This document shows positions 47,411-48,806 of a DNA stretch of 64,000 bases, piece by piece. The stretch lies in NCBI GenBank assembly GCA_002269645.1, contig NIVC01000491.1:62001-126000 (forward strand), read 5' to 3'. The translations under genes were made by a program, and so were the position numbers. The stretch's first letter is position 1. Every line of letters starts with the position of its first letter. This DNA comes from Macrostomum lignano (Eukaryota). The notes below the pieces were generated by a model that was not told the origin of the DNA, did not search any database, and was given only the letters and a program-made list of their open reading frames with translations.

Positions 47411-48084
47411 TAGTTTAACAATTCTTGTGCGCTGTAGGTGGGAAAATAATTATCAAGAAAGTGCACTCAATAGTCTACTTGCTCAGATCCTTGAGTCCTT
47501 GTTTGTATTAAAATTCTTCAATAATGGTGAAGTGCAATTCCACAGACATTGCAAAGGACAAACGCTGTTAGCTTAATGCATAGCAAGTTTTGTTTATATG
47601 CTCTTAGAAATTGATTGATTGCACATGAATTCATCATTCTGTGATAGAAGTACTTTGATTAGCCTAGGTTTTTTTCTAACTACGAGCGTAGTTACTATCT
47701 GAGAAACTATATGGCGTAATTAATAATTAATTTAATGTAGTAGATAATCAGCTGATAAATTTAGCTCTGAATCAGTAAAGGTGCTATTTCATTTACTCTA
47801 GGCTTATCTATATCGTAAACATTGTAATGTAAAATAGCTCCCACTAATGCTCAGTTGTTGTTCTTAACTTAGCACATTCTTCATTTTGAGTTACTGAGGG
47901 CAGAGTGGGGCCACATGGGATTGCGATCCTGCTGCTGCTGGGCACCCTCCAGCAGTCACATGGCTCTGGCCTCGGTGCATATCTTATGTTATTGTGTCCC
48001 TAGCGTATTGGCTGCTAGTGTTTATCATTGTCATGATACTCTTAGTAACTTGCAGTTCCACCACTGCTCTGCTTCCATTCGCAG

Positions 48085-48806
48085 TGGGTGCAGGACGTTC
48101 GCGACAAACTGATGCTGGAGGATGAGTCCCGCATACCTGTTGTACTTCTGGCTAATAAGGTGAGTGCGGGCTGTCTGTCTGTCTGTCTGTCTGTCTGTCT
48201 GTCTGTCTGTCTGCTCTGTCTGTCTGTCTGTCTGTCTGTCTGTCTGTCTGTCTGTCTGTCTGTCTGTCTGTCTGTCTGTCTGTCTGTCTGTCTGTGTCTG
48301 TCTGTCTGTCTGTCTGTCTGTCTGTCTGTCTGTCTGTCTGTCTGTCTCTGTCTGTCTGTCTGTCTGTCTGTGTCTGTCTGTCTGTCTGTCTGTCTGTCTG
48401 TCTGTCTGTCTGTCTGTCTGTCTGTCTGTCTGTCTGCTCTGTCTGTCTGTCTGTCTGTCTGTGTCTGTCTGTCTGTCTGTCTGTCTGTCTGTCTGTCTGT
48501 CTGTCTGTCTGTCTGTCTGTCTGTCTGTCTGTCTGTCTGTGTGTCTGTGTGTCTGTCTGTCTGTCTGTTTGTCTGCCTTTCTGTCCGTCTGTTTGTCTGT
48601 ATGTCTGTGTGCCTGTCTGCCTGTCTGTCTTTAGCCTGGCATTCGCATTCAGCATCAATCAAACGAACCCCCACCCCACCCAGGCCGACCTGACCCAACG
48701 CAATACCAGATCGCAGACGAGTGTCGAGTCGCTGAGCCGTGATCTCCAAAGTCAGCTCCAACTCCAAGCTCACCACAAATACAGTGGCGCATGCAGTATC
48801 CAATAG
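48085..48806 (+). other. Duplicated Rab exon 4 + diverged exon 5 (alternative 3' module or gene fragment)
   Basis: 48085-48159 matches 42105-42179 at 73/75 nt with intact AG and GT. After a (TGTC)n intron, ccccacccag|48684-48806 encodes [40 protein letters not shown], whose first ~60 nt are homologous to Rab exon 5. I saw no copies of exons 1-3 between 43265 and 48084. Confidence 0.85.
48172..48632. repeat. (TGTC)n microsatellite in the intron of the duplicated Rab module
   Basis: Same motif as in Rab intron 4, but shorter. Confidence 0.95.

Follow-up and report, generated by a model that had tools for sequence, protein, structure and literature searches.

The Rab32B-type gene and its downstream neighbor

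The window, i.e., the whole stretch of 64,000 nt that was analyzed, belongs to scaffold NIVC01000491.1 of the Macrostomum lignano assembly Mlig_3_7 (window position x corresponds to record position x+62000). Over window positions 39501-59500 the scaffold sequence was 100% identical, with a value of 96.9% in the first bin. Its plus strand carries a Rab gene in five exons, located at 40182..40402, 41350..41406, 41891..41951, 42105..42179, and 42983..43264. The first exon begins with the ATG at 40182 and codes for the G1 motif GEVAVGKT, and 5' of it there is a TTCCAG acceptor of the trans-splice type (40164-40169, plus strand). Exon 2 contains the G3 motif DVAGHERF and exon 3 ends in phase 0 at the donor AAG/gtaagg. 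The last exon codes for the D of NKxD, helix 4, strand 6, the SAK motif (G5), and helix 5 before reaching the stop codon at 43262-43264, with a tail that ends in GCCF. This exon also contains an internal GT, at 43184 on the plus strand (GTT/GTCAGT), that serves as a donor in the UniProt model A0A1I8HUL5, while a poly(A) signal (AATAAA) is found at 43788.

The product, with 231 amino acids, has a complete Ras domain (Pfam Ras, PF00071, E = 2.5e-43, covering profile positions 1-160 of 162) in which G1 to G5, including SAK, are all present. Compared with PDB, its top matches were human Rab32 (1.2e-53), Rab38 (4e-50), and Rab7L1 (Rab29, 2.5e-47), with Rab7 far behind (ca. 1e-32). The top database matches carry the name Rab-32B, at identities of 50 to 60%, and these relatives come from molluscs, echinoderms, cnidarians, and amoebozoans. 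A His replaces the catalytic Gln in the G3 motif (AGHERF), a replacement that is invariant across the Rab-32B group. The GCCF terminus is a double-Cys geranylgeranylation motif, and orthologues end in GCCS or QCCS. Judging by its sequence, this gene is an ordinary member of the Rab32/Rab38/Rab29 subfamily of GTPases, of the “Rab32B” type. Database proteins nearly identical to it were limited to two GenBank entries, both from M. lignano.

Downstream, at 49086..49646 on the plus strand, there is a gene for a secreted Cys-rich protein of 131 amino acids (exons 49086-49346 and 49511-49646; GenBank PAA82157.1, BOX15_Mlig014903g2), preceded by putative promoter-like elements at 48865..48944 of the same strand (ATTGG at 48865 and 48882, TATAAA at 48937). 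Incidentally, no record was found for the UPF0220 product of the window.

A partial duplicate of the Rab gene

A second version of part of the Rab gene, of ca. 700 bases, is located at 48043..48742 on the plus strand, 4.8 kb 3' of the stop codon of the parent gene and directly upstream of the promoter of the secreted-protein gene. This module is a partial and unprocessed duplicate. Its source, 42063..43036 on the plus strand, starts 42 nt before the end of intron 3, spans exon 4 and the (TCTG)n intron 4, and stops 54 nt into exon 5; the 42 nt agree with the start of homology ca. 40 nt upstream of the exon 4 copy that had been proposed in a previous, sequence-only reading of the locus. By blastn, 48043-48630 aligned with 42063-42665 at 92% identity over 604 nt, microsatellite included, and in the unique segment of 133 nt (48043-48175 versus 42063-42195) 128 positions out of 133 are identical (E = 5.6e-59). 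Copies of exons 1 to 3 were looked for near the module and not found. The search of the interval 43300-48043 for ORFs and repeats gave only tandem arrays and repeat-encoded ORFs, with no trace of a transposon carrying the fragment, and an Rfam scan of the whole 64,000-nt window returned zero matches.

The copy of exon 4 (exon 4b, 48085..48159, plus strand) has 75 nt and phase 0, with the acceptor ttcgcag/TGG and the donor AAG/gtgagt. It departs from exon 4 by two nucleotides, both of them non-synonymous (H to R and V to L), and the final 50 nt of the two exons are identical. The intron 4 copy (48160..48683, plus strand) is for the most part a (CTGT)n microsatellite (48171-48630), followed by a diverged acceptor region that has an insertion of 26 nt relative to the parent. 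Next comes the ORF of exon 5b (48684..48806, plus strand, acceptor cccacccag/GCC), in which 48684-48742 is the homologue of the start of exon 5 (first 18 codons). Compared with exon 5, there is a net gain of 5 nt at ca. 48693-48705, and 2 nt are missing at 48721/48722, so that the parental frame is back at SVESLSR (SIESLSR in the parent). The 21 codons that follow (48743-48806) are unrelated to the parent, in frame, and end in CSIQ and a TAG stop (48804-48806). This anatomy had been correctly read from the sequence before, i.e., intact splice sites with phase 0, compatible with the end of exon 3 at 41951, a deletion ca. 16 nt after the insertion that restores the frame, and divergence after SVESLSR toward the CSIQ ending. 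Equally well founded was the remark that no obvious poly(A) signal follows. Among the hexamers AATAAA, ATTAAA, AGTAAA, and TATAAA, only TATAAA (at 48937 and 49057) occurs between the 5b stop and the next gene; AATAAA and ATTAAA are absent up to 49645, where the first ATTAAA is the next gene's own.

The limit of homology was placed at ca. 48742 (43036 in the parent). From there onward, the best local alignment scored 25, versus 20.6 ± 2.6 for shuffled sequences (maximum, 30). A match of 14 out of 15 positions past this limit (CAAAGTCAGC[G/T]CCAA, corresponding to the SAK region of the parent) was rejected as an extension of the homology because its alignment score falls inside the shuffle range.

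Copies of the locus on three scaffolds

The Rab locus with its module was found on three scaffolds, i.e., NIVC01000491.1 (the window), NIVC01000690.1, and NIVC01000733.1. The module of the window is 100% identical to that of NIVC01000733.1 and ca. 97 to 98% identical to that of NIVC01000690.1, and the window haplotype has a mosaic structure, composed of these two. The authors of Mlig_3_7 report substantial redundancy in the assembly, which they attribute to extra chromosome copies in the sequenced line. This known redundancy, together with the abundance of (CTGT)n arrays in the region, might suggest that the duplication is an assembly artefact absent from the animal. However, the three scaffolds have copy-specific substitutions and an indel, and exon 4 (with H and V) occurs together with exon 4b (with R and L) in a protein model of ML2, an independent assembly, so that an artefact is hardly credible. 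The presence of the module on all three copies indicates that it is real and that it is older than their divergence.

Both splice sites of exon 4b and the acceptor of exon 5b are intact in the three copies. The gain of 5 nt in exon 5b is also common to all of them, and the 2-nt deletion is found in two. At the indel site, NIVC01000690.1 reads GACGAGATTGTCGAG and the window GACGAG--TGTCGAG. Free of the deletion, exon 5b of NIVC01000690.1 reads ...RSQTRLSSR and stops after 17 codons, with no CaaX box; if it is read in the frame of the window it gives CIIQ, which is out of frame on NIVC01000690.1 itself. The CSIQ ending is thus present only in the window and in NIVC01000733.1. Since NIVC01000690.1 keeps the parental exon length at the site, parsimony makes the deletion the derived state, and the CaaX box of the other two copies is probably derived as well. 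As far as these alignments can tell, neither the restored frame nor the CSIQ ending is a conserved feature; both are an accident of the haplotype, in which the frame runs on into sequence that is not homologous.

Constraint on exons 4b and 5b

The lineages of exon 4b have accumulated three non-synonymous changes and one synonymous change across the copies; the equivalent figures for the parental exon 4 between haplotypes are zero and two. In the ORF of exon 5b there are three substitutions between haplotypes, all of them non-synonymous in the frame of the window, plus the 2-nt indel. The 270 nt located 3' of exon 5b (48807-49076) differ from NIVC01000690.1 by a single 1-nt indel. Expressed as differing positions rather than events, this makes 5 out of 123 nt in exon 5b versus 1 out of 270 nt downstream (Fisher p = 0.013). 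Divergence from the parent is also uneven along the module, 3.8% for the 4b segment versus ca. 12 to 13% plus indels for the 5b segment (p = 0.04 to 0.08). The low divergence of exon 4b could plausibly reflect gene conversion, and could also reflect some constraint on this exon. Gene conversion was set aside as the origin of the contrast, which is marginal and comes with no clear pattern of sharing within haplotypes. Every indicator points in the same direction, toward relaxed constraint on the coding potential of the module, in a way that is directional and not statistically strong, because so few substitutions are available. In a duplicated exon that is functional, one would expect intact splice sites and phase, and these were found; one would also expect a frame conserved by purifying selection, and what was found is a frame-changing indel and mostly non-synonymous substitutions, in small numbers.

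Gene models that use the module

The annotation of Mlig_3_7 was guided by RNA-seq (StringTie/TACO and de novo transcripts). Its pipeline allowed 1000 multi-mappers in STAR and merged ORF-bearing transcripts with downstream non-coding ones bearing a poly(A), over repeat stretches of up to 10 kb. On NIVC01000690.1, the GenBank model PAA78425.1 (BOX15_Mlig013120g2) takes Rab exons 1 to 4 and continues into exon 5b by an exact donor-to-acceptor join, skipping exons 5 and 4b and ending in RLSSR and a stop. That exon 5b might be the end of a Rab transcript, as had been suggested from the sequence, thus finds indirect support, although the product of this model has no CaaX box. On NIVC01000733.1, where the module is identical to that of the window, the Rab model is canonical and ends in GCCF. 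The NIVC01000491.1 record has no CDS for either the Rab gene or the module. No model ending in exon 5b was found on these two scaffolds.

The UniProt models from the ML2 assembly use the module in other ways. A0A1I8HUL5 contains exon 4, exon 5 up to 43183/43184, exon 4b, and the secreted protein. The residues R and L make the identity of exon 4b unambiguous in this model, and the donor of this exon is joined to an AG acceptor (49075..49076, plus strand) located 9 nt 5' of the ATG of the neighbor (...LLANK/LRPMSRF...). A0A1I8HMK4 and A0A1I8HBB9 start at a Met inside exon 4/4b and run into the secreted protein. None of the GenBank or UniProt models found follows the path from exon 3 to 4b and 5b, and the exact 178-amino-acid sequences were not found in a collection of 15 billion proteins. 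A search of papers and their supplements for Mlig013120 and Mlig010651 found no mention of either.

On NIVC01000733.1, the Rab gene and the gene for the 131-amino-acid secreted protein are named Mlig010651.g1 and Mlig010651.g2, respectively. According to the methods of the authors, a Mlig prefix stands for a transcript cluster at 95% identity, and genes were cut from transcriptional units that they interpret as operon-like precursors resolved via SL trans-splicing. In M. lignano, ca. 7% of the assembled transcripts have been reported to be polycistronic precursors and ca. 15% of the genes to be in operons. The shared prefix suggests that the Rab gene and the secreted-protein gene come from one operon-like unit.

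The location of the module between the g1 and g2 genes of one prefix would suit a role at the RNA level, in which decoy splice sites divert some of the Rab pre-mRNA to an unproductive end (regulated unproductive splicing) or exon 4b acts as a 5' exon for the neighbor. The conservation of the splice sites in the three copies would also be in line with such a role, as would the fact that independent models join the 4b donor to the 49077 acceptor and the internal donor of exon 5 to exon 4b. However, the UniProt/ML2 models could be the work of an ab initio predictor that strung together in-frame exon-like pieces, as gene finders of this kind readily do. Moreover, the acceptor at 49076 is TAG, and not CAG or the [T/C]TNCAG motifs that are enriched in M. 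lignano, and conservation of splice sites over a divergence of 2 to 3% is expected by chance. We regard an RNA-level role as unlikely.

If, on the other hand, the module were completely silent and never spliced, all the models would have to be artefacts of multi-mapping, ab initio prediction, or the merging rule. There are grounds for this in the pipeline, with its 1000 multi-mappers and its merging over as much as 10 kb of repeats, in the identity of exons 4 and 4b over their final 50 nt, and in the NIVC01000491.1 record, which has no Rab or module model. Against it, the junction between exons 4 and 5b in PAA78425.1 is exact, a result that blind merging would rarely give, and exon 5b, with ca. 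87% identity and indels relative to exon 5, is too diverged for canonical reads to be misplaced on it. Complete silence thus appears quite unlikely.

The putative 178-amino-acid product

The isoform proposed in the sequence-only reading, of 178 amino acids and without G5 and the last helix, would result from splicing exon 3 to 4b and 5b. Its anatomy is as described. The Pfam Ras match ends at position 135 of the 162 of the profile, i.e., the G domain is incomplete; G1 to G4, including NKAD, are kept, and the alignment to Rab32 indicates that everything from helix 4 through helix 5 is replaced, including strand 6 and SAK (G5). The route is another matter, as the model on NIVC01000690.1 goes from exon 4 to 5b and not from exon 3 via 4b. 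In the AlphaFold2 model of the product, strand 6 and helix 5 are absent, and the tail coded by exon 5b has pLDDT values of 31 to 57, except for one helix that resembles helix 4. It should be noted that the confidence of the model on the retained part arises because the alignment drives it, and it does not inform about stability. Most likely, the product would be an unstable by-product rather than a farnesylated decoy.

Exon 5b could nevertheless be conceived as a functional alternative terminal exon (with exon 4 or 4b), giving a truncated Rab32B that would be farnesylated at CSIQ and would work, bound to membranes, as a decoy or as a dominant negative. Farnesyltransferase accepts a Cys at position -4 followed by S, M, Q, A, or C as the last residue. 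The ending matches the Cys-x-x-Gln pattern, which is a farnesylation pattern (yeast Ydj1 ends in CASQ), G1 to G4 with NKAD are retained, the splice sites and phase are intact, and PAA78425.1 does terminate in exon 5b. But the CaaX box is missing on NIVC01000690.1, the very copy annotated with exon 5b, the substitutions between 5b haplotypes are all non-synonymous and accompanied by a frame-changing indel, and strand 6, G5, and helix 5 are missing from a protein whose tail is predicted to be largely disordered. The poly(A) signal is absent as well, and the models for the window scaffold and NIVC01000733.1 do not use the exon. A functional isoform of this kind is very unlikely, and the earlier idea of a membrane-anchored, farnesylated decoy finds no support when the CaaX box occurs in two of three copies, the changes are almost all non-synonymous, and exon 5b is more variable than the adjacent promoter.

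In a variant of this explanation, the recent 2-nt deletion would have turned a dead pseudo-exon into an open terminal exon in the window and NIVC01000733.1, and the outcome would be a polymorphic, newborn minor isoform with a new farnesylation signal that sequesters Rab32 partners (e.g., a GEF) on membranes. Were this true, a frame would have been reborn by a compensating indel, and a small GTPase would have changed its lipid anchor. We found nothing that favors such a newborn isoform, and we consider it highly improbable.

A probable decaying relic in a putatively transcribed spacer

Starting from what is observed, i.e., the duplication, its three copies, the difference in frame between them, the substitution pattern, and the public models, we consider it likely that the module is an unconstrained and decaying partial duplicate, a set of pseudo-exons whose surrounding spacer is probably co-transcribed and gives rise to by-product transcripts. 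Two features typical of pseudogenes are found here: a homology to the parent that is partial and includes an intron, with the 5' exons absent, and frame-disrupting indels together with truncation relative to the parent.

The sequence of events could have been as follows. The spacer between Rab32B and its neighbor would be transcribed by read-through, and the resulting pre-mRNA would expose the splice sites of the relic to the spliceosome. As these sites look functional, they would be taken up in transcripts and models in several inconsistent ways, which would correspond to the joins seen in the models (exon 4 to 5b; internal donor of exon 5 to 4b and on to the next gene; 4b to the next gene). 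The ancestral exon 5b, after the shared insertion of 5 nt, would have been out of frame and would have ended in RLSSR and a stop, a state apparently retained on NIVC01000690.1. In the window haplotype, the later deletion of 2 nt would have reopened the frame by chance, into unrelated sequence ending in CSIQ. Both the low level of the by-product splicing and the absence of function are what we infer for the relic. Some observations run counter to it. The model PAA78425.1, which is transcript guided, ends in exon 5b, and at least one copy may make appreciable use of this exon. The splice sites of exon 4b and the 5b acceptor are undamaged in every copy, and exon 4b is little diverged from its parent. 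Besides, the return of the frame in two of the copies, with a Ydj1-like C-x-x-Q ending, might in principle be adaptive and recent.

Seen as a decaying relic, the module is one more instance of a very common genomic feature, an ordinary leftover of segmental duplication in a genome that is very rich in repeats and partly polyploid. It would explain why the M. lignano models for this locus are inconsistent, with a truncated “Rab” (PAA78425.1), fusions (A0A1I8HUL5, A0A1I8HMK4, and A0A1I8HBB9), and a missing Rab model on NIVC01000491.1. Its practical value is for annotation, as a warning against taking PAA78425.1 and the fusion models as real isoforms.

Comparison with known systems

Within the Rab32/Rab38/Rab29 subfamily, the parent gene has the full set of G1 to G5 and a CC tail, whereas the product ending in exon 5b would be an incomplete Rab. 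In vertebrate Cdc42, alternative 3'-terminal exons switch the lipid anchor (CVLL versus CCIF); the G domain is complete in either isoform, and vertebrates have conserved both exons. By analogy, duplication of the last exon of the Rab gene could give two prenylation ends, CCF for Rab GGTase and CSIQ for farnesyltransferase. Unlike the Cdc42 exons, however, exon 5b provides an end that lacks strand 6, G5, and helix 5 and that differs even among the copies of a single genome.

Mutually exclusive exons are reportedly born by tandem exon duplication (Kondrashov and Koonin 2001; Letunic et al. 2002), and exons 4 and 4b share with them the same length and phase and intact sites, splicing from exon 3 to 4b being formally possible. 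In contrast to such pairs, exon 4b lies beyond the terminal exon of the parent and its AATAAA (43788), no model joins exon 3 to 4b, and this exon accumulates non-synonymous changes.

The module resembles an unprocessed partial pseudogene in that it copies an intron and exons of the neighboring parent without the 5' exons or a promoter of its own, and in its frame-shifting indels, its changes of unconstrained appearance, and its haplotype-variable state. It differs from one in keeping its splice sites, in lying within a spacer that is probably transcribed, and in appearing in public gene models, and also in that one of its haplotypes has secondarily regained an open frame.

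Repeat arrays and haplotype structure of the Rab locus

The locus of the Rab32B-type gene (window 40182-43264) is crowded with large tandem arrays, found at window 38985-40135, 40645-41266, 42200-42949, 44159-44842, 45788-46155, 47084-47409 and 48171-48630. A 24-mer repeated 48 times lies directly 5' of exon 1, intron 1 holds a 24/46-mer array, and the remainder are (CTA)228, a 22-mer present in 15 copies and three (TCTG)n arrays. The recurring (TCTG)n arrays may have served as substrates for the unequal exchange behind the module duplication. The sister scaffold NIVC01000690.1, which carries the same duplicated module, has its copy of exon 4b at 20046-20120, with changes of its own (one V to F replacement and one synonymous change). 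Intron 4b measures ca. 1.7 kb there but 0.5 kb in the window; microsatellite length thus varies strongly among copies.

Comparison of window 31000-56000 with both sister scaffolds showed that the window haplotype is a mosaic of the sister copies. NIVC01000733.1 is 99 to 100% identical to the window at ca. 34.0-41.5 kb and again at ca. 46.5-49.0 kb, and NIVC01000690.1 is the nearest copy for ca. 41.5-46 kb. This pattern implies either recombination or gene conversion among redundant copies, or a switch of haplotypes during assembly.

Gene neighborhood

The genes around Rab (window 36734-37156, 51295-51819, ca. 55861-57409 and ca. 31400-34600, all on the + strand) code for a trifunctional GART purine synthesis enzyme, for proteins with HIG_1_N and RF-1 domains, and for a UPF0220 protein. 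Neither the HIG gene nor the Rab gene is called in the window's own GenBank record; both are called in the sister scaffolds. Downstream of the module, a two-exon gene (window 49086-49346 and 49511-49646, + strand) specifies a protein of 131 aa that has a signal peptide and is rich in Cys in its C-terminal half (…CLFVCRYCYQHN|TAGLLHCANNWCLARVK…CP…). The database listing gives no precomputed Pfam domain for it, and among 5.8 billion clusters there were no similar proteins beyond the copies of M. lignano itself. The product could be a secreted peptide or hormone-like precursor specific to the lineage.

Ends and motifs of the Rab gene

A TTCCAG acceptor located 12 nt 5' of the Rab ATG (window 40164-40169) fits the published SL trans-splice motif of M. 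lignano. In NIVC01000690.1, the GenBank Rab CDS is 5'-partial and begins right after a CAG within a poly-Gln-coding stretch (10000/10001). This CAG may be a trans-splice site, in which case the SL, whose 3' end is ATG in M. lignano, would provide the start codon. In the G3 motif (DVAGHERF, window 41350-41406), the catalytic Gln is replaced by His, a residue invariant in the aligned Rab32B-type proteins (33 of 33), whereas human Rab32 has Gln at this position.
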